Origin: Paramoeba atlantica
Taxonomy: Eukaryota > Protista > Discosea
Direction: 5' to 3'
Length of the DNA stretch: 64,000 nucleotides
Assembly (NCBI GenBank): GCA_977017575.1
Contig: CDRNVI010000160.1
Span: forward strand, 1-64,000
The notes under the pieces are model-generated. The model was not told the DNA's origin. It saw nothing but the letters and a program-made list of their open reading frames with translations, and made no database searches. The position numbers and the translations under genes are program-made. The first letter of the stretch is position 1; each line of letters opens with the position of its first letter. Below are positions 30,470 through 46,970 of the stretch, piece after piece.

Positions 30470-31530
30470 ATGAAGAAACGAATTGATCCAACCGAGGAGG
30501 AAAACGAGGAGGTAGTGAATGAAGAATCCATTGATCAACCGAGGACTCTCGAAGTCGTGTACATCATTCTCTGGAATGTCCTTCCCAGTGTCTTGATTAT
30601 CCTTATCAACAAACTTCTTTTTCTCGAGTATTCTTTTCCTTCTGCAACAATTCTCAGTTTCCTCCATTTGTTATCACAAATTGTGGTGATGAGTACTCTT
30701 TTGTTTGCTGGGGTTTTCAAACGAAAGCCTGTTTCAATTTTCACGATTTTGAGCATCAATATCCCACTTTCTTTGTCTCAGGTTGGTTGAAAAGAAGAAA
30801 AGAGAAGAAGAGGGAGGAGAGAGAAAAGAGGATGAATTTCATCACATCACAACAACACTTTTTTAAAAACTAAAGACAGGTTTTTCAAGCGATGAGTGTC
30901 AAAATGAATTCGCTAAGCACTTTCATGGTCATCAAACAACTTACCATTCCCTTGACTGCCTTTGCAGAAGTTTTGGTTGGAAAAAAAATGTTCACTTGGA
31001 AACTTTGCCTTGTTGCTCTGCTTATGACAATCAGTTCAACTCTCATTTGTGGGATTGAAATCCAAAACTCAAACATGTTGGGGATCTTGGTTGCTCTTCT
31101 TTCTGTTGTTACCAATGTATCTGGTCAGATGCTAGTGAGTGATGCCCTCCAAAATTCTGATGCTCTTGAAAAAATTGAGCCCCTCCAGCTGAGATTTGAG
31201 GCAACTGTCAAGGGGGGATGGGTCATGTCATTTGGCTTTTTGGTGGAGTTTTATCTCTTCCCTGGGATCATTGACGAAACGTCAGCCTATGATTGGAGTC
31301 AATGTATCTTTTTTTTGGCTTTGTCATGTATTTTGGCCCCTATTGTTGCAATTTCATTCTACTTTGTTGTGGAAACAGTTTCACTTTTTGCATATCAAAT
31401 TCTCTCACCATTGAAACTTTCGTTGGTTATCTTTTGCTCAATGATGTTTTTCCATGAGGAAATCCCTTTCACAAAGTTTTTGGGACTCACCTTGGCTGTG
31501 TTAGCAACCTTTATCTACACCAAATATTAA
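30470..31530 (+). CDS. Nucleotide-sugar transporter (TPT/SLC35E-like, UXT-like)
   Basis: join(30470..30781,30880..31530). About ten hydrophobic helices; motifs ILINKLL, YSFPSATILSFLH, NSLSTFMVIKQLTIP and YQILSPLKLSLVI match the TPT/NST family. Confidence 0.87.
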
Positions 31531-31710: not shown

Positions 31711-32697
31711 TCACAATCTAAAAAAATCAAATTCTGGATAATTTGTCCAATTTGTCCAACCTGCCCACTTTGGTAGTCTAAAAGTGATTTGTTTCCTAGA
31801 CGTGCTAGTGAAATATGGTTCACAATGATCTGGTGTTCCAATCTTCCATTTCAGTCGATTGTGATATGCCCAAACTTGATCCACCCAAACTATGGTCCTC
31901 TTGCTGGAAATTAAGTTGTTAAAAAAAGCTTTAATGAACTTCCCATCCGCAGATCTTCTCTTTGGAGGAGGAAAAACCTCCCCCCACAACGCGCCTGATT
32001 CTTTAATTGCTCTTGATCGACCAAAGAAAGACCCTGTATCAACCGTTCCAATTTTGGGCAGTGGGACTAAAATTCCTTTCTTCTCGAATACCATGTTCCA
32101 GAGTGCTCCATCCAGTAAAGGAAGAGCTCTCACCAGTTCAGAAGTCTTGTTGAAAAAGAGACACCAGAGAATTGTGTCCAGATCGAGATGGTAGACAAAC
32201 ATTTCATCAGGTAGGAAGTCATGAGCAACATTCTTGATCCAAGCTGGGTATCTGAAGGGATCTTCATTTAAATCAGGCCCTTTCCCAGTTCCTCTCATAA
32301 TCACAGGAATGAAGACAGAGTTAAATTGTTTTGTTTTCTCAAGGGAGAAAGAGCTGGTTGCTAAAGTCCCATTTTCAGCAATCTTATCAGTGAATGTTAC
32401 ATCCAAATAGTCTTCTACACCAGCTCGATTGAGAATGTCATAGATATCAGATAAGAGAGCCCCCTCTTTGGCAGATCGAGGAAGGGCATCAGGAAAGATG
32501 AAGTAGCAGATGCGAGTCCATGCTTGAGGGGTTGTTTTGAGCTGAGATTGGATCAGTTTGAGAGTCTGGAAAAGATAGTTGTTGTCAGGTTCCTTGTAGA
32601 AAGATGTCACAAGTGCTAATGTCTTGGTATCGACTTGTAGGACACTGGTTATCGAGAGAAGAACCACCAAAAAAAAGACCCTGATGAACCCTTTCAT
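31711..32697 (-). CDS. Putative GT-A fold (GT2-like) glycosyltransferase with N-terminal membrane anchor/signal, 328 aa, intronless
   Basis: ATG at 32697 (MKGFIRVFFLVVLLSITSVL). DxD motif YHLDLDT; downstream VDTGSFFGRSRAI...RSADGKFI resembles the C-terminal motif of prokaryotic GT2-like enzymes. Confidence 0.68.
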   Translation of the reverse strand: MKGFIRVFFLVVLLSITSVLQVDTKTLALVTSFYKEPDNNYLFQTLKLIQSQLKTTPQAWTRICYFIFPDALPRSAKEGALLSDIYDILNRAGVEDYLDVTFTDKIAENGTLATSSFSLEKTKQFNSVFIPVIMRGTGKGPDLNEDPFRYPAWIKNVAHDFLPDEMFVYHLDLDTILWCLFFNKTSELVRALPLLDGALWNMVFEKKGILVPLPKIGTVDTGSFFGRSRAIKESGALWGEVFPPPKRRSADGKFIKAFFNNLISSKRTIVWVDQVWAYHNRLKWKIGTPDHCEPYFTSTSRKQITFRLPKWAGWTNWTNYPEFDFFRL

Positions 32698-32885
32698 CCC
32701 GAGAAAGGAGAGAAGGAGAGAAAAACTGAAGCTGCTGTCTTTGCGAAAAATGGCCAAGACGCCAAAAAAGGAAAACCAAATTCTCCTTTTCCTTTTTCGC
32801 TCGAATCGGCACACATTTTCCGTTCTCACCAACAACCACAACAACCACAACAACCACAACAACCACACGCACAAACAACTTGTTT

Positions 32886-34922
32886 ATGTCTGGCGGTGGT
32901 GTGATCGTTATTGGTGCTGGTGGATTGGGCCGATGTGTCGAAGACTTTTTTGAAGTGGCTGCGTTTGTTGATGACGGTTGTAAAGAATCATCTGTCAACG
33001 GTGTTCCTGTATTGGGTGGTGTCAGTAAGTTGCTTGAACTTGCTTCATCCAACAAGGAGATTATTCAAGTTGTCTTCGCTCTTGGCACCCCTGAAACAGC
33101 AAGACAGATCCATGAGAAGCTTCACTCGAGTCCCGCTTTTGCAAACTTGGCTTTCCCATCGTTAATCCATCCTTCTGCTTCTGTGAGTCGCCATGCCAAG
33201 GTTGGAATTGGAGCGATTGTGTTCCCTCATTCAGTTATTGGCCCAAATGCAGTGATTGGAAATTTCTGTTTTCTCAACACTTCAGCAGTTCTTTCTCACG
33301 ACGCTCATCTGGGTGACTTTTGCCGGCTGCACGGAGGGAGTCGAGTTCTCGGATGGACCCAAGTTGGAGACTCAGTCAGTGTTGGATCTCAGGCTGTTGT
33401 ACGTGATCGCTTGACGATTGGGAACAATGTGGAGATTGGTTGTGGAACAACTTTGGTCAGCGATATGGGAAGTAACCTTGTGGTGGCAGGCAATCCAGGT
33501 CGAGTGTTGAGAAACTTGGCACCTGTTGCTGCTGCTGAGAACGGAAAGCGATCTCGCTCATCAGAAGAAGTTTCGATTCCTGTTGACAATTCCCGGCTCA
33601 CTCACCCATTACATGGCCATTTGTTGAAATGTCCTTTCCCAGAAACAGTGCTCGACTTGCTGCACGAGAAGATGAAGAGCTGCAAAAGTAATGGGAGGGG
33701 GTCTCATTATCAACAGACTGTTTATAACCCATTGTTGTATGAAGAAATTCCCGAGATCAAAGACTTTTTGCACAAAACATTCCCGCATGACCGACCCCTG
33801 GCAGACTTGATTTTTCAGCAAGGAGAAACAGACTCAGGGTTTTCTTGGCACTGTGATTATGACAGCAATTTCATATTGGAGGATCCAACTGTAATGTTCT
33901 CACTCTGGTTCACTCTCACTGATATTACGAGCGAGACTGGAGCGAGGTTGCAGTTCACGGCTGACCATAACAGCATCCTTTTGGCAAGAATGGAAACTTT
34001 TAGTCGTGTGTACCATGGGCATCCAGCGTGTGGAGTAGCGCATCCATGGGGGAGTGTGGTCCTCCCAATTCTTCATGAACGGGCAATTGCATTGGATATG
34101 AAGAGAGGAGATTGCCTTGTATTCAGCAATCACATTTGGCATAAACCAGAGAGGGTGAAGAAAGAGGGTTTTGCTCGTACATCCTATGTCATCCGAATGA
34201 TACCCAAGAATGCCAGGTTCCATCGTGGCCGTGCCGAGATTGCCTCCAAAAGGTTCAACCCTTTTAAAATAGACCAAAAATTCTTGAACACACCTGATAT
34301 TCAGTGGGTTGATGAACCTTATGAAAATTCGAAAGAAAAAAAAAGCTTCTCAGAGAAGAATTCAATGGCTGTATTTGAAGGGTTTTGGATGAAGCATTAT
34401 GGATTTCAGGAGGCTATGGCCACTCGTCTCGTTATGGATGCGACTGAGAATTCCTCAAGCGTGTGGAAGCTCCTGGAAAGTGGGGTTATATCTCCCCCAA
34501 CCATGCTCTCTTCAGAGTGGAGGAAGGACCTCACCATTGAACAAGCTGAGGAGTTAGTCTGCCTCTCTATTTCAGAGGAAAAACGAACGATTCTCAAATA
34601 CCATCACTTTTTGCAGATGGCAGCCGCTGTACACCGCTTTCCAAACCATTCTTTTGCTGGAACACCTTTTGAAGGAGAAGAAACGAGATTGAAGGCGGTA
34701 AAAGTAGTGGAATTTGTTCGAAGGAGACCGGAGTGGGCCTTTCAAATTCGTCTTACTCAACTAGATGGACCGAATGGATTCTTCTACCCACCTGGGTGGA
34801 CCCTTGACTCTTTAGATCATTACTTGAAAGCAGAGGGAACAATCAATGAGAGTGTCATGGTGAGGTGGCAGAAGCAGTGTAATTCCATTCTTTCTGCTCT
34901 GGAAAAGTCAAAAATTATTTAA
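32886..34922 (+). CDS. PglD/NeuD-family sugar acyltransferase fused to a PhyH-like 2OG-Fe(II) dioxygenase and an unknown C-terminal domain, 678 aa, intronless
   Basis: N-terminal VIVIGAGGLGR...FVDD...VPVLG, LIHPSASVS, hexapeptide repeats, LSHD (catalytic His position) and VAGNPGR. Middle domain WHCD...LWFTLTD...GDCLVFSNHIWH...RTSY gives the HxD...H triad and an RxS 2OG-binding motif. Confidence 0.9.
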   Translation: MSGGGVIVIGAGGLGRCVEDFFEVAAFVDDGCKESSVNGVPVLGGVSKLLELASSNKEIIQVVFALGTPETARQIHEKLHSSPAFANLAFPSLIHPSASVSRHAKVGIGAIVFPHSVIGPNAVIGNFCFLNTSAVLSHDAHLGDFCRLHGGSRVLGWTQVGDSVSVGSQAVVRDRLTIGNNVEIGCGTTLVSDMGSNLVVAGNPGRVLRNLAPVAAAENGKRSRSSEEVSIPVDNSRLTHPLHGHLLKCPFPETVLDLLHEKMKSCKSNGRGSHYQQTVYNPLLYEEIPEIKDFLHKTFPHDRPLADLIFQQGETDSGFSWHCDYDSNFILEDPTVMFSLWFTLTDITSETGARLQFTADHNSILLARMETFSRVYHGHPACGVAHPWGSVVLPILHERAIALDMKRGDCLVFSNHIWHKPERVKKEGFARTSYVIRMIPKNARFHRGRAEIASKRFNPFKIDQKFLNTPDIQWVDEPYENSKEKKSFSEKNSMAVFEGFWMKHYGFQEAMATRLVMDATENSSSVWKLLESGVISPPTMLSSEWRKDLTIEQAEELVCLSISEEKRTILKYHHFLQMAAAVHRFPNHSFAGTPFEGEETRLKAVKVVEFVRRRPEWAFQIRLTQLDGPNGFFYPPGWTLDSLDHYLKAEGTINESVMVRWQKQCNSILSALEKSKII

Positions 34923-35021
34923 TAAAATATTTTTCATTCATGAATGAAAAAGGTAATAATAATAATAATTTATATTTTTAGAAAAATATATAAAGAGTTT
35001 TCTTTGATTAAAGTAAATAGA

Positions 35022-36302
35022 TTAAGACGAGTTCTCTTTTTCCTCAAAAGAAAAAGAAACATCAAGAGGTTCGAAAGGAGGATTTTCTTTAAAATGTGCT
35101 TTCAATTCTTTCGAATGAAGAAAAGCAGTCTTCAAAATGGAAACGATTTGAAAAATCTCTTCTTCCTTGATGGATGGACCACCAGGGAGCTGAAAACAAA
35201 TTTCTGATAACTTTTCAGTGTTGGGGAGGGGGTGAGGATGGAGACGACCTTTGTATGGTTCCATATTTTGAACACCTGGGACAAAATATCGACGACATCG
35301 AACATTCTCAGCACGCAAGACAGCCACAATTTCATCTCGATTAAGTTGAAACTTATCGGAATTATCCAAGCAACAAACAACAGATTGGTAATTGTTGGTT
35401 GAATTAGGGTGAACGCCAGTTGCTCCAACCAACTGAACTCCTGGGATTGAGGATAAGTGCTGTTTGTACAAATGCCACACCATTGAGCACCTTTTCATCA
35501 AATCATTCAGAGAGTTCAGGTTGGCAAGAGCCAAACCTGCGTGGAGTTCAGATAATTTCGCATTTGATCCCAAACAAACAACTCGATCAGTCATCAAAAA
35601 CCCAAAATTTCGAAGAAATCGACATTTTTCTGCGAGTCGTTCATTGTTGGTGGTGATCATCCCTCCCTCTGCAGAAGAAAAAAACTTGGTGGCATGAAAA
35701 GAAAAGACTTCAGCCCTCCCAAACCCTCCAATCTTTTTCCCTTCATGTTGACAGTTGAAAGCGTGGGCAGCATCAAAGAGCAATGGAATTTCATGAGAAG
35801 AACAAAGCTTTTCCATCGCCACAACATCACATCCTCTTCCCCACAAATGAACTCCAATCACAGCAGCAGTGTTTGGGCCAATGCAACGAGAAAGAGAATC
35901 AACTGAAATCAAGTGACTATCCCGATCACAATCACAAAACACACATCGATACCCAGCCATTTCGACGGCATGTGCAGTTGCAACAAAAGTCCAAGCAGGG
36001 ACAATCACTTCAATCTTTTCTCCTCTCTCCCAAGGATCACCCAATTCCGCTCGTAAAACCAACTGCAGACCAAGAGTCGCATTTGCCACACAGATACAAT
36101 ATTTCACCCCCAAAAGCTCGCTCAAATCTTTCTCCAGCTTCTGAACAAAAGGGCCATTGTTCGTTAAGTTCCCGCTTTCAAGAGACGATCGAAAATACTC
36201 CAATGCTTTCTCGATATCGAGAGTGTTTGGTTTTCCAACGGCGAGTTCGTTTTTGAAGGTGGGTTTCTTGGTAGAAAGAACAGCCAGCGGTGGAACGGCC
36301 AT
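35022..36302 (-). CDS. DegT/DnrJ/EryC1/StrS PLP-dependent sugar aminotransferase, VioA-like, 426 aa, intronless
   Basis: ATG at 36302. Motifs LTNNGPFVQKLE, VANATLGL, VPAWTFVATAHA, GVHLWG, FDAAHAF, FSFHATK (PLP Lys), EGGMI, RNFGF, NAKLSELHA and RRYF. Confidence 0.95.
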   Translation of the reverse strand: MAVPPLAVLSTKKPTFKNELAVGKPNTLDIEKALEYFRSSLESGNLTNNGPFVQKLEKDLSELLGVKYCICVANATLGLQLVLRAELGDPWERGEKIEVIVPAWTFVATAHAVEMAGYRCVFCDCDRDSHLISVDSLSRCIGPNTAAVIGVHLWGRGCDVVAMEKLCSSHEIPLLFDAAHAFNCQHEGKKIGGFGRAEVFSFHATKFFSSAEGGMITTNNERLAEKCRFLRNFGFLMTDRVVCLGSNAKLSELHAGLALANLNSLNDLMKRCSMVWHLYKQHLSSIPGVQLVGATGVHPNSTNNYQSVVCCLDNSDKFQLNRDEIVAVLRAENVRCRRYFVPGVQNMEPYKGRLHPHPLPNTEKLSEICFQLPGGPSIKEEEIFQIVSILKTAFLHSKELKAHFKENPPFEPLDVSFSFEEKENSS

Positions 36303-40754: not shown

Positions 40755-43700
40755 ATGTGGGAGAAACATCTTATTCTCGCTTTTTTGTTCATCTTTCTCG
40801 TCTTGTTTTCTCCAACCAACGCGACCCAACCATGCGACTTTACTGCTTCAGTTCACTCAGGTTATTTTTCATTTTTTTTTAGTTGTTTTCTCGAATGAAA
40901 AGTAACCACTTTTTTTTTGGCTCAAGATTGTGAGTGGCCGAGTTGTAATATAATTGGAGAAGATCACACAGCAGAGTCTTTTTCCAATGTGTCATTCCCT
41001 TCAAATTGCACAACAATCAGAATTGAGGATTCAATATTCGCCTCTACGACTTTTCGCTTTTGTGAATTCACTCCAGAAGGATCATTTTTCATCACTAATT
41101 CAGTTTTCGATCACTCTGTTTGGTCGGAGGTCCTCATTCTTGGCGAATTTCCAACTTTAGCACCAGTACCAGAAAATTACATTGTTCTCTTCGAAAATTG
41201 TTCTTTTTACGACGTTGAATGGGAGGACGTGACCATTTCAGTTTCGGGAACTCGATATTTTCCGTCTTCTACGTTCGAAAGTCGAGGAGGAATTGGGATT
41301 ATAGAATGTAATTTTGATCAATCAAATTGGGTCAGTGTTAAACTCCAAACACTTCCTGAATTCGTTCTCACTTTAGTTGAAGATAACTTTGAGTTTACCA
41401 CTGGTATTTTTTTCGAAGAATCCACCTTTAATGATGCGGTATTTTATGACATTCTTTTTGATATGATGGGAGAGGTGTTCTTAGATGGAGAAGGCAACCC
41501 AGGAATGAGAATGGGCGGGATTATTTTCTATGATTGTGAGTTTGTCAATGCGAGATGGTCTGCGTCAATCTTTCGTTTTGATGGTTCATTAACTGCAATG
41601 AATGTTTCGAGTAATGGCTATCCCTTTTGGAAAAAACCTCTTTGGGGTCTTGCATTTATTCATATGAAGGCAGCTTTCTCTTATTGGGAATCTGTTGATA
41701 TCTTTCTGAACGGGCAATTCAATGCGAATGAAGCTTGTGCTGAATGTTTTCTCTCTGGATTCCATATTTTGGGAGAGGAGACAAATTTTTCTTCTGCCGT
41801 CTTTGATGATTTTAATATCGATTGCACCTCCATTTTCTCAGAGGGCGAAGAAATAACCACTTCCTCTCTCATGTCAGCTGTTACAATTGGTACATTATCT
41901 TATCCAGCGTACAATATAACTGAATTCGGTGTACTTAATTTCGCCGATTGTTACTTTCGAAACTTTCGAATTTTTTCAGATGTTACAATGGACTGTACAA
42001 AGGAAAATTATCGAGTTTACATGCGGAATGTAGATTTTTCTGGGAGCACTTTTTGTCGATGGGAAATTGGGGCAGAGGGAGGAATGTTTTCTGAGACTTC
42101 TAACTCTTATTTTGTGGCTCTTGTCTCCTGGGCTGATTTTCGAGAGACTGTGTGGAATGATGTTGTCTGGGAAGCTGAAGTAACATTCGATGCTAACAAC
42201 CCTAGTACTGGAGTTTTTTTCCAAGGAATATATTTACAAGAAAGTTCTTGGAATAATGTAAAAATGTACTTAGAAAACCAAGGCGGATCTTTTGGTACTA
42301 ACTCTCGCTCCTTTCACTTTCAATTTAATGTGCAGCTACAAGGCATGACAATGTGCAGTGTTGAGATGAGGGCAGCTGGGGTAGATCAGGATTTTTCGTG
42401 TTCAATGTCATCCTCTTGGGATCAGGCAGACATCTCTGGATTTCGTTTTGTTGCTCCTGATGGTGATTTTGAAGCATCATCGTACACAGGCTCTTCTTTT
42501 GTTCAATCCGACTTTTCATCTTCACTGTTTGGCTTGACTTTTATCGGCTCTGAGACTGTTTGTGATGTTTCTGTAAATGGAGGTCCTCTACAAGACCTCG
42601 GAAATTGCAGCAGTTCAACAGTTCTTGATCGATTTGCTGGTTGTCCTTATCTCCTTCAGAATTTTTCTCTTTCTGATTCTGAAGCTTGTCCTGACTTCCC
42701 CTCACCTTCACCAGCACCATTGCCAGTACCATCCCCAATACCAGCACCATCACCTGTACCAGCGCCCTCTCCAGTACCAGCGCCCTCTCCAGTACCAGCA
42801 CCATCTCCAACCCCAGCACCATCACCTGTACCAGCTCCATCTCCTGTACCAGCACCATCTCCAGTACCAGCACCATCTCCAGCCCCAGCACCCTCTCCTG
42901 TCCCAGCACCATCTCCAACCCCAGCACCATCACCAGTCCCAGCACCATCTCCAGTCCCAGCACCATCTCCAGTCCCAGCACCCTCTCCTGTCCCAGCACC
43001 ATCTCCAACCCCAGCACCATCACCTGTACCAGCACCATCTCCAGTACCAGCACCCTCTCCAATCCCAGCACCCTCTCCAATACCAGCACCCTCCCCAATA
43101 CCAGCACCATCTCCTGTACCAGCACCATCTCCAATACCAGCACCATCTCCAATACCAGCACCATCTCCAATACCAGCACCATCTCCAGTCCCAGCTCCAT
43201 CACCTGTACCTGCACCATCTCCAATACCTGCACCATCTCCAATACCAGCACCCTCTCCAGTACCAGCACCATCTCCAATCCCAGCACCATCACCTGTACC
43301 AGCACCATCTCCTGTACCTGCACCCTCTCCAATACCTGCACCATCTCCAATCCCAGCACCATCACCTGTACCAGCACCATCTCCTGTACCAGCACCCTCT
43401 CCAGTCCCAGCTCCATCTCCAGTCCCAGCACCATCTCCAGTACCAGCACCATCGCCTGTACCAGCACCATCTCCAGTACCAGCACCATCTCCAGTACCTG
43501 CACCATCTCCAGTCCCAGCACCATCACCTGTACCAGCACCATCTCCAATACCAGCTCCATCTCCAGTCCCAGCTCCATCGCCTGTACCAGCACCATCTCC
43601 AGTCCCAGCACCCTCTCCAGTCCCAGCACCATATCCAGTCCCAGCTCCATCTCCAGTCCCAGCTCCATCGCCTGTACCAGCACCATCTCCAATACCAGCA

Positions 43701-46700
43701 CCATCCCCAATACCAGCTCCATCCCCAATACCAGTTCCATCGCCTGTACCAGCACCATCTCCAATACCAGCACCATCCCCAATACCAGCTCCATTGCCTG
43801 TACCAGCACCCTCTCCAATACCAGCACCATCTCCAGTACCAGCTCCATTGCCTGTACCAGCTCCATCTCCAATCCCAGCACCATCCCCAGTACCAGCACC
43901 ATCCCCAGCACCATCTCCAATACCAGCACCATCTCCAGTACCAGCTCCATCTCCAATCCCAGCACCATCTCCAGTCCCAGCTCCATCTCCAGTACCAGCA
44001 CCATCCCCAATACCAGCTCCATCTCCAGTACCAGCACCCTCTCCAATACCAGCACCATCCCCAGTACCAGCTCCATCTCTAATACCAGCTCCATCTCCAG
44101 TCCCAGCTCCATCCCCTGTACCAGCTCCATCCCCTGTACCAGCTCCATCTCCTGTCCCAGCGCCATCTCCTGTACCAGTTCCATCACCTGTACCAGCACC
44201 ATCTCCTGTACCAGCACCCTCTCCAGCACCAGCACCATCTCCAATACCAGCACCATCCCCAGTACCAGTTTTACCCCCTCAAATAATTCCTCTTACAACA
44301 TCTTCCTCTTCTTTATTATACCTAGAAGCGCCAGTCTCTTCCCTCTCTCTCACATGGACATATTTTGATAGTTCTCTCTCTGAACCATGTCAAATTTGTC
44401 CATCACATGTGTGTCCATCAAATATCTGCCCAGGTTGTTCTTGTTCTGTTGATGGGGTTCTTGTCCCTTCAAATGCACTCCCTTCATTTTCTGAGATCAC
44501 CATTGGAGTTGGCCCCTACTTTTATCTCATTGATACATCAGTTTGGATTGAACCCACAATTGTGTTTGACAAGGGAAATGAGTTGTTGTGGTCCTCAGAC
44601 AAAGGAGATTTGATGATTGGAGTGGAAGTGTTGAATCCAAACACATGCCCAGAAGATGAACAGCTCATTGTTGCTGAATGGAGATGCCGATATCCTGATG
44701 CAGATGGAAGTGTGTGTCCTGGTACCTCTTCTGTCATTTCTGTGAACAGTAATAATCCTTCACTCGAGGTTGAGTATCCAGAAGACAGCCCTTCTGTGAT
44801 TGTCTGGACTTTGACAATGTCGTTTTGTTTGCCGAGTGAAGAAAGAAGGGAAGCAAGGGGCCAAGTAATTGGGGGTTGGGAATTGGCTGAGCCAGTTACG
44901 GTTCAAAAAACTGAATCGTCATTTCTCTTGTTCAGTTTTTCCTCACTTTCTTTTACAGTATGTGAGTCTTTGCTAACTGCTGACACTATCACACTCCAGC
45001 TCCAAATTGCTGCAGAATCTTGGAGTGAACTGTTATCAGATGATTCATCTGCTTTGATTTCTGTTCACTGGGCAGCTGAGAAGTGGGAGAATGACGATAC
45101 AGAAAGTAGAGTAAGTGTGCCAATGGATCAATCATGTGATGAGTCACCATGTGAATTGCAGTTTGGAGGAAACTTTGTGACACCAACAGGATTGGACAAC
45201 GGAACATTTACAGTTGTATTTCGTGGTGGATTTTTGGAGCCAGGAGAATCAGTCCAAGTCCAAACAACAGCGGTTCCAGTGTCACCTGATGATGGATCTG
45301 TGTTAAGTGGTTGGGAAGAGGCTACAATCCGATCTTGTGTGATTACACCTCTTGTCCCCCCATCTGGGGGGGATTGTTTGATAGAGTCCCCTGTTGAATC
45401 TTTAACAAATTACTCGATCGAATGTTTTGGATGGGAAGGAGAAAACGGCCCCTTTGCTTACATTTTTGAGATTCAAGGGCAAGATGGCTCATTTGTTGCG
45501 ATTTCAAACCCGATTGGACCCACAACATCGATTTTTTTCCCTTCAAGTCCTGAGGAATCTGAGGTTCAAATTCGTGTTCGGGTGTGTAATACTCGGGGAG
45601 CGTGCTCAGATGGGTATTTATTAGAGGTTGTTGTTCTTGCAAGAGAAGAGATCAGTGATTCTGAATGGGTTGACCTCATTGAACATGATCAAGAACTTCT
45701 TTCATCTGGGGATGTCATGGGAGCTGGAAATTATTTGTTATCTATTCTTGAGTCCTCTCCTCCCATAGAAATCCAAGCCGATTCAATTGAGATTATCACT
45801 GAAATTGTCGATACAATGTTAATTGCGAAACCACCAGCTGAAATGACAGGTGCGGAAGCAGACTTAGTTTTGAATTTACTGGCTTATTCTTCGAGCGATG
45901 GGAACAACCGAGACCAAAATTATGAGATTCTCCAGAATGTCACACAAGCAACCAGTTTCCCTCCTGGTGTTGCTTTAACTGTTTTGGATCAAGTAGCTAC
46001 CGGATCTGAATTCGACAGCGACAGTTCGGTTACATTTGATAATGTCAACGAAATTATCGTGAGGACTCAAGATCTATTGACAACGCAAACAGACTTTTGT
46101 GGGGAGGAATTTTTGTTTGCTGGGGAAACAGTGTCATATTTTGCTTTTACTCGTTCAGCGACCGAGTTGGGTGATAGTGATACATTGGTTCCGATCTATC
46201 CAGATGGGGATTCAGAAGATTCTTCTTCATCAGTATCATCTTTCTTTGTTTTACCTCCTTTTATCTCTGAATTAATTCTTGAGTGGGCGGACGAAAACTT
46301 TAACGAACAACAAACAACTGAGTCTTTATATTGTGTTCTGCTTCAGAGATCTCAAGTTGGGGAACAGTGCGATTTTCCGTCTCTTGACACTGAGAGTGAG
46401 AGTGATACGAGTGGGAGTATCACCGCGGGATCAGATGTCCAAGGATTGACACTATCGGTGCGATTGGATGGAGGAGAACCTGCAGAGATCGAGATTAACA
46501 ACCCTGATCTTGAAATCCAGATTTTTTATGATGTCGAAGAAGTAACACGAGCGTTCAAGAAGAAGCAGAAAAGAATCCAAGATTCAGGAGGTGGTGGTGG
46601 AAATCGTTTTGTTCTGGAAGATGATTTCGCTGAGTTGAGTGAAACATTGTGTGCGTTTATTAATGGACCAGATTGTACATATGATTTAAGCGGGTGTTAT

Positions 46701-46970
46701 TTGTCTGAAGAAGATTATGCAGAAGGGAGAATTGTTTGTATTTGTAATCATTTATCTAATTTTGGGCTCTTGTTTGAGTTTTCGACGTCTGGAGAAAATT
46801 GGACGACTTTGAGGATTGTGTCTCTTTCTTTATTGGGCGCAGTTTGGATCTTTATGATTCTATTCTTTTTCTTGGCTTCGCACCCTGAAATAGCTCGTAG
46901 ACTTGGAATTGAATCAAACGTTCAAAGAGATATCAGGATTTGGGGAGACCGAAGTTCTGTTGCTTTGTAG
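40755..46970 (+). CDS. ~2,050 aa single-pass surface protein: signal peptide, pentapeptide-like beta-helix region, (PAPSPV/I)n stalk, REJ-like region, GPS motif, one TM
   Basis: join(40755..40860,40927..46970). Exon 1 gives [23 protein letters not shown] and splices in phase (G|AT). REJ-like [10 protein letters not shown]...PFAYIF; GPS motif [15 protein letters not shown]; [25 protein letters not shown]; TAG at 46970. Confidence 0.88.
42705..44270 (+). repeat. Coding 18-bp tandem repeat, roughly 85 units, encoding PAPSP(V/I/T)
   Basis: CCAGCACCATCTCCAGTA-type units; variation is mostly synonymous or V/I. Confidence 0.97.

Follow-up and report, generated by a model that had tools for sequence, protein, structure and literature searches.

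4-Amino-6-deoxy sugars of the bacterial type are known from bacteria and from giant viruses, with DesI forming deoxythymidine diphosphate (dTDP)-viosamine and the Mimivirus enzyme L136 forming uridine diphosphate (UDP)-viosamine. The sugar N-acyltransferases PglB (its acyltransferase domain, PglB-ATD, of Neisseria; PDB 4m98), VioB (7txp), PerB (4ea7) and PglD consist of a PglD_N subdomain and a left-handed beta-helix with a catalytic histidine, about 210 residues in all, and their partner is a DegT aminotransferase that makes the 4-amino-6-deoxy sugar. Hydroxylation of an N-acyl group on an activated sugar has a precedent by analogy in CMAH and the mycobacterial NamH, which convert N-acetyl to N-glycolyl groups. 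In the PhyH superfamily, CurA Hal (3nnf) chlorinates an acyl group bound to acyl carrier protein (ACP). Its relative BtnX (9pv1) chlorinates C2 of the valerate chain of biotin and many other carboxylic acids, and is converted to an alpha-hydroxylase by the substitutions G117D/E (PMC13489965). Here we describe a gene of the protist Paramoeba atlantica in which a predicted acyltransferase of the PglB/VioB kind is fused to a predicted oxygenase of the CurA Hal/BtnX kind and to a C-terminal domain that matches nothing in the domain libraries. It lies in a stretch of 64,000 nucleotides (contig CDRNVI010000160.1, positions 1 to 64,000, of assembly GCA_977017575.1), referred to below as the window.

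The fusion gene

An earlier reading of this sequence (the original prediction) had reported one uninterrupted open reading frame (ORF) with three parts: a complete PglD_N/left-handed beta-helix module, a PhyH-like domain with HxD...H and RxS motifs, and about 200 unassigned C-terminal residues. The frame is as described, with 678 uninterrupted codons from the first ATG at 32886, and we estimate that some 680 stop-free codons at about 46% G+C would arise by chance with a probability of the order of 1e-15. Other public sequencing runs were compared over 32700-35000, the repeat at 32825-32877 being skipped, and DNA contigs from three of them span 32878-35000 with either no difference or one, and no insertions or deletions (indels). 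The sole substitution, in run X2, is a G>T change at 33570 that replaces V229 by F in the linker between the first two domains. Because the other runs show no indel and at most one substitution, the long frame is not an assembly artefact. The gene call P0001 in ENA is 100% identical to the fusion protein.

The acyltransferase and oxygenase domains

The first 212 residues form a predicted sugar N-acyltransferase of the NeuD/PglB/VioB type, which by its sequence is complete and carries the catalytic histidine; the module reported in the original prediction is thus recovered in full. PglD_N (PF17836) matches residues 6-79 over its full profile (1.9e-08), Hexapep (PF00132) matches at 3.4e-12, and TIGR03570 (NeuD/PglB/VioB) is matched from positions 2-202 of 202 (E 7.8e-44). 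The PDB matches are to PglB (4m98, 1.9e-25), VioB (7txp, 1.3e-20) and PerB (4ea7, 4.3e-17). The nucleotide-sugar-binding PglD_N subdomain carries G10-A-G-G-L-G and is followed by the left-handed beta-helix, in which H138 (S137-H138-D139, within 'LSHDAH') aligns with 'DHD' of PglB 4m98 and 'SHG' of VioB 7txp; we take this column to be that of the catalytic histidine (the position of PglD H125 and PerB H141). The fusion protein has no signal peptide and the enzyme should therefore be cytosolic. In an AlphaFold2 (AF2) model of residues 225-678, the linker that follows has a predicted local distance difference test (pLDDT) score of <50 (residues 1-12 of the model).

The second part is a predicted Fe(II)/2-oxoglutarate (2OG) oxygenase. 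PhyH (PF05721) matches residues 307-423 (5.2e-06; 27.3 bits against the Pfam cut-off of 22), and the AF2 model of the domain has a pLDDT of ~90. The facial triad consists of H322 and D324 (W321-H322-C323-D324, an HxD motif) and the distal H419, with R431 as the 2OG-binding arginine, and H322-x-D324, H419 and R431 all sit in conserved metal and 2OG columns in a family alignment of 20 sequences and in alignments with BtnX and CurA Hal. All of the motifs reported in the original prediction are present, but of the RxS motif (R431-T432-S433) only the arginine is conserved across the family.

By both profile and model this domain falls within the CurA-Hal/BtnX branch of the PhyH superfamily. When the PDB is searched with a family profile, the leading matches are BtnX (9.9e-18) and CurA Hal (4e-17); the next, PtlH (1.6e-4), is 13 orders of magnitude weaker, and PHYH itself is at 0.12. 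The top structural match is also CurA Hal, with a Z score of 19.8 and a root-mean-square deviation of 2.8 A over 229 residues (VIA-align); SnoN and the proline hydroxylases lie some 2.4 Z units lower, and human PHYH (2a1x) has a Z score of 14.6. A search of the ESM Atlas shows a resemblance to a bacterial PhyH cluster (TM score 0.82). The halogenases of the branch are recognized by HxG/A, whereas this domain has HxD (H322, D324), which makes it a relative of the halogenases and not itself one. The same aspartate is present in P0005 and P0007, the eukaryotic relatives for which there is sequence at that column, and all three proteins should therefore be hydroxylases.

The stand-alone relatives of the oxygenase fall on both sides of this distinction. 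Five of them (P0012, P0014, P0015, P0020 and P0022, at loci L004, L007, L009 and L010) have HxG instead of HxD and look like candidate radical halogenases that have not been described. The gene contexts of the stand-alone relatives are mostly those of acyl chemistry or of sugars. P0009 (HxD) lies between TauD and a PP-binding carrier protein, P0014 (HxG) adjoins an acyl-CoA (coenzyme A) dehydrogenase, and P0015 (HxG) adjoins a penicillin-amidase-type gene, an arrangement conserved in three contigs. P0017 (HxD) shows that the oxygenase family also occurs in a bacterial sugar (nonulosonic-acid) cluster; on an AT-rich bacterial contig (L011, 1-8816) it directly follows GlmS, and is near NeuB, a cytidine monophosphate (CMP)-sugar synthetase and a Polysacc_synt_2 dehydratase. 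A further homologue (L008, 1705-2280) shares 46% identity with residues 256-415 and has an in-frame stop at 2086-2088 where the fusion protein has arginine; it may be a pseudogene (a decaying copy) or contain a sequencing error. The 4.8-kb L008 contig showed neither an acyltransferase nor a C-terminal domain.

The C-terminal domain

The approximately 200 residues said to be unassigned in the original prediction remain so. Residues ~475-678 have no match in Pfam, even at an E value of 10, in NCBIfam or among PDB sequences, and an ESM Atlas feature search with residues 470-678 gave no usable match. The only relatives are P0006 and P0023/L002, which are 30-33% identical and share 52 invariant columns, and a profile search with the alignment of these sequences (A3) returned P0006 and P0023 only. 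A Pfam scan of the three sequences at an E value of 10 revealed nothing shared, and A3 gave no confirmed locus among JGI metagenome contigs or in IMG/VR. The searches accordingly do not point to a giant-virus copy of this domain, IMG/VR having been searched with it and not with the oxygenase or the acyltransferase. The conserved motifs include RPEW (614-617) and GFFYPPGW (631-638), and the first ~50 residues may correspond to the helical C-terminal tail of the stand-alone oxygenases. AF2 predicts helices only, with pLDDT <50 in context and 52 for the domain alone, and an exhaustive fold search with the latter, weak model gave a best Z score of 4.9, which is meaningless. An ACP-like reading of the segment 'LDSLD' (640-644) was rejected, as its serine is threonine in both relatives. 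The domain accompanies the oxygenase in every eukaryotic gene that we found, and our guess is that it helps in assembly or substrate handling.

Rarity of the fusion and a second eukaryotic example

The three-part architecture is very rare. An exhaustive phmmer search with residues 225-678 of 1.84 billion representative proteins gave 19 matches in all, with two sets of eukaryotic relatives of the whole module among them and, for the architecture as such, two or three relatives. The whole protein, as the query of a word-index search over 5.8 billion proteins, returned only itself, together with unrelated fusions of PglD-type domains to epimerase or Bac_transf. Searches of the open-access literature brought up nothing relevant on PglD with phytanoyl-CoA dioxygenase, on viosamine with dioxygenase, or on DegT in eukaryotes. 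The original prediction had placed this architecture outside the described sugar pathways, and would have fallen had it proved common and already characterized; the searches agree with it, and the fusion is apparently undescribed.

A comparison is possible with a second eukaryote (organism B), in which a gene at L002 8103-13527, interrupted by two GT-AG introns, encodes in order an aminotransferase, an acyltransferase, an oxygenase and the C-terminal domain. The exons were analyzed separately and not as a joined, spliced protein. A single exon (P0010) encodes the DegT aminotransferase, the PglD-type acyltransferase, which is 41% identical to that of P. atlantica, and the start of the oxygenase. 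The passage from oxygenase to C-terminal domain is continuous within one exon in L002 (12765-13526), in P0006 and in P0023, the last of which represents this gene in a sister sample of organism B (L005, 1-3028). Both domain junctions of the fusion protein are thus continuous coding sequence in organism B, at 31-45% identity. The L002 contig also carries FtsJ, S1 and PLAC8 genes. P0005 and P0006, from a third source, seem to share a 1.5-kb JGI contig (the first gene call is of 182 amino acids, the length of P0005) and again pair the oxygenase with the C-terminal domain, the contig ending before any acyltransferase could appear. Between the two near-identical samples of organism B there are eight synonymous and three non-synonymous codon differences in exon 3, and this mostly synonymous pattern fits selection on the C-terminal domain.

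The fusion is therefore real and conserved, and not an accident. Fusions of the Rosetta-stone kind normally join steps of one pathway, and the shared order of the parts, with the aminotransferase added to the same polypeptide in organism B, constitutes such a link between them.

Neighboring genes and the probable identity of the sugar

The features of the locus are listed in Table 1. Convergent with the fusion gene is an aminotransferase gene whose product matches PF01041 at 5e-92 and, in the PDB, DesI (2po3) at 1.1e-80, with ArnB next at 8e-39. By its match to TIGR04427 (PLP_DesI, 4.8e-109) it is classed as of the DesI type but not an equivalog, and presumably supplies a nucleoside diphosphate (NDP)-4-amino-4,6-dideoxyhexose. 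An amino-sugar setting, in keeping with the sugar chemistry of the original prediction, is supported by this neighbor as well as by the domain matches. The aminotransferase fused in organism B has Mimivirus L136 as its closest solved relative (1.3e-37). The two aminotransferases were considered as orthologues and this was rejected, their identity being 23%. Because these two non-orthologous partners are both nearest to viosamine-forming enzymes, they point to the same sugar, 4-amino-4,6-dideoxy-D-glucose, and VioB and PglB as the best relatives of the acyltransferase agree with this. From these homologies the sugar is most likely viosamine.

Table 1. Positions of the fusion gene, its domains and the adjoining genes in the window
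Feature	Coordinates	Strand	Extent or arrangement	Basis
TPT/EamA-type transporter, nucleotide-sugar-transporter superfamily	30470..31530	+	Exons 30470-30781 and 30880-31530; 98-nt GT-AG intron	
Type-II membrane protein, candidate Golgi glycosyltransferase	31711..32697	-	328 aa; divergent, head to head, 188 bp spacer	
Fusion gene (ORF)	32880..34922	+	680 aa from TTG start	
NeuD/PglB/VioB-type sugar N-acyltransferase domain (predicted)	32886..33521	+	Residues 1-212	Pfam, TIGR03570, PDB
Low-complexity linker (APVAAAENGKRSRSSEEVSIPVDN...)	33522..33593	+	Residues 213-236	No domain match
Fe(II)/2OG oxygenase domain (predicted), PhyH superfamily, double-stranded beta-helix	33594..34307	+	Residues 237-474	PF05721, alignment, AF2
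Orphan all-helical C-terminal domain	34308..34919	+	Residues 475-678	No library match
Stop codon TAA	34920..34922	+	Followed by an AT-rich 99-bp spacer to the convergent aminotransferase gene	
DegT-family pyridoxal-phosphate (PLP) sugar aminotransferase, DesI type (predicted)	35022..36302	-	426 aa from ATG; convergent	PF01041, TIGR04427, PDB

Two further genes lie upstream. One encodes a putative transporter, and its intron indicates that ordinary cis-splicing operates in the P. atlantica genome. Such an intron, and the frequent strand switches seen here, differ from what trypanosomatid gene arrays show. The other encodes a 328-residue protein with an N-terminal hydrophobic stretch and an LDLD motif, for which there is no Pfam match; its ESM features resemble those of GT2 glycosyltransferases (score 0.95; 21/30 matches). 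The fusion gene of organism B lies between a gene for a Rhamno_transf-like protein (8.4e-10) and a convergent one for a Nuc_sug_transp/UAA transporter. Homology between the Rhamno_transf-like protein and the 328-residue protein is not supported (E 0.18), and both the transporter and the transferase families differ between the two loci; despite this, the module is accompanied by the same functional set in both organisms. In the divergent spacer just 5' of the fusion-gene ATG there is a CAACAACCA-like microsatellite at 32829-32868.

The window as a whole is eukaryotic, containing genes for a class C G-protein-coupled receptor (GPCR; 7tm_3 with an ANF receptor domain), a MYND-finger protein and a REJ/GPS protein in addition to the intron-containing transporter gene. 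An endogenous giant-virus element was considered and is unlikely, since the flanking genes (GPCR, MYND, REJ/GPS) are ordinary cellular ones. The G+C content at third codon positions is 0.43 in the fusion gene and 0.36-0.43 in its neighbors, so the gene is not compositionally foreign. Within the 2017-aa REJ/GPS ORF (40917-46970), the segment 42001-44000 has a G+C content of 0.52 and a GC skew of -0.44; further long ORFs overlap it, opposite in strand or in a different frame, and this suggests a repeat of low complexity within the coding sequence.

A proposed pathway and its alternatives

We regard the chances as even that this is a single-exon gene whose product is a cytosolic enzyme of several domains in an NDP-4-amino-4,6-dideoxyhexose pathway, N-acylating NDP-viosamine and hydroxylating the acyl group. 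The 4-keto-6-deoxy sugar would come from a nucleotide-sugar 4,6-dehydratase whose gene lies elsewhere, and the adjacent DesI-like aminotransferase would, from its homology, convert this sugar to NDP-viosamine. The PglB/VioB-type domain, whose family and catalytic histidine are evident, would then acylate the 4-amino group with acyl-CoA as the donor. The HxD oxygenase would hydroxylate the acyl moiety, whether still carried by the CoA donor or already part of the completed N-acyl sugar, giving for instance N-glycolyl from N-acetyl or a product of the hydroxybutyryl type. Judging from gene context, the TPT-type transporter could carry the product into the secretory pathway for use by the neighboring candidate glycosyltransferase.

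Hydroxylation of the acyl donor or of the N-acyl group was among the options of the original prediction, and of these we infer that the acyl group, on CoA or on the sugar, is the oxidized substrate, because of the kinship to CurA Hal and BtnX and the gene contexts of the stand-alone relatives. The support is indirect, coming from the acyl-acting habit of the closest characterized relatives and from those contexts. More tentatively, and with some doubt, we suggest that the locus represents a self-contained machine of a few protists that makes a new hydroxy-acylated (e.g. N-glycolyl or hydroxybutyryl) 4-amino-4,6-dideoxyhexose for surface glycans. In this reading the C-terminal domain would have a novel fold and a catalytic or acyl-handling role of its own, and the oxygenase would be the first natural hydroxylase of the CurA-Hal/BtnX branch to act on a nucleotide-sugar- or CoA-bound acyl group.

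Several observations weigh against the proposed pathway. The TIGR03570 score of the acyltransferase, 149.7 bits, is borderline, falling below the curated cut-off of 160.8, and the TIGR04427 score of the aminotransferase is 365 against an equivalog cut-off of 650. No 4,6-dehydratase was found in the 64-kb window. The transporter matches PF03151 (TPT) at 1.3e-06, below the cut-off and over profile positions 85-290, and the glycosyltransferase assignment of the 328-residue protein, drawn from language-model features, is a lead only. Two small identical contigs, in the first and third domains, come from run X5, which is guessed to be RNA, and are no proof of expression. A catalytic function of the C-terminal domain, if it has one, could alter the whole scheme. 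Lastly, the PhyH-fold enzymes SnoN, SnoK and HygX, which act on sugars or aglycones, are among the structural matches of the oxygenase.

This last point bears on the strongest of the alternatives, that the oxygenase acts on the sugar ring or the 6-methyl group of the NDP-sugar (by hydroxylation, epimerization or the like) to give a ring-modified N-acetyl amino sugar. The three enzymes, acting on sugar moieties, are good structural matches with Z scores of ~17, and PglD-type enzymes usually take plain acetyl-CoA, which leaves little acyl chain to oxidize. By profile, however, these enzymes (SnoK, E 0.068) fall far short of the ~1e-17 of BtnX and CurA Hal, and the contexts of the stand-alone relatives indicate acyl thioester or amide chemistry; we therefore consider action on the ring unlikely, if still worth bearing in mind.

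It is less probable again that the substrate of the oxygenase and C-terminal part has nothing to do with the sugar, being for instance some protein, lipid or small acid, and that these parts are joined to the acyltransferase solely for co-expression or localization. The C-terminal domain is an orphan, BtnX-type enzymes can be promiscuous toward carboxylic acids, and the L008 homologue is without an acyltransferase within 1.7 kb upstream. This homologue, with its in-frame stop, may nonetheless be a decaying copy, and the retention of part order at 31-45% identity in organism B, where a sugar aminotransferase has been added to the same polypeptide, speaks against an unrelated substrate. Finally, that the oxygenase is catalytically dead or the gene a relic, such that only the acyltransferase matters, is highly improbable: the family is tiny, but the ORF is intact over 678 codons, every iron and 2OG ligand is present, the model of the domain is of high confidence, the module recurs in conserved form in other species, and the substitutions between strains are mostly synonymous.

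If acylation and acyl hydroxylation of viosamine is the correct reading, eukaryotic glycobiology would be widened by a pathway of a cellular eukaryote that includes transporter and candidate transferase genes of its own. The pairing of a sugar N-acyltransferase with an Fe/2OG oxygenase predicts a new modified sugar and offers a ready-made pair for chemo-enzymatic synthesis, and a natural HxD member of a halogenase branch provides a comparison for the halogenase-to-hydroxylase switch engineered in BtnX. The four-domain fusion of organism B makes the pathway assignment directly testable, and the C-terminal domain, which has three relatives in public data, is one for which there is no predicted fold.

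Comparison with known systems

The acyltransferases PglB, VioB, PerB and PglD are stand-alone and bacterial, whereas the fusion protein is eukaryotic and has ~465 additional residues. The oxygenase shares the GF-x-WH, FxN...H and R...R motifs with both CurA Hal and BtnX, the substrates of which are acyl chains beside a carboxyl or thioester group (PMC13489965). Those two enzymes have HxG and chlorinate, whereas the fusion oxygenase has HxD and should hydroxylate, as the G117D variant of BtnX does; CurA Hal is found within a polyketide synthase (PKS) module and BtnX is free-standing, and here the oxygenase is joined to a sugar acyltransferase. CMAH and NamH, which catalyze the analogous conversion, are Rieske-type enzymes and have no relation in sequence or fold to the fusion oxygenase.

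As in the Mimivirus viosamine pathway (the R141 dehydratase, L136 aminotransferase and L142 acetyltransferase), VioA/VioB and DesI, the predicted chemistry is the amination of an NDP-4-keto-6-deoxyglucose, followed by N-acylation. The Mimivirus, VioA/VioB and DesI pathways are not known to include an oxygenase step, and the predicted product is probably a hydroxylated N-acyl-viosamine sugar of a kind not yet described in eukaryotes. Unlike the Mimivirus and bacterial pathways, the genes reported here are in a cellular eukaryotic genome, beside host genes and with genes for a transporter and a candidate transferase. The fusion is thus composed of a PglB/VioB-type acyltransferase, an HxD member of the CurA-Hal/BtnX branch and an orphan domain, and all but the last of these are of known kinds.

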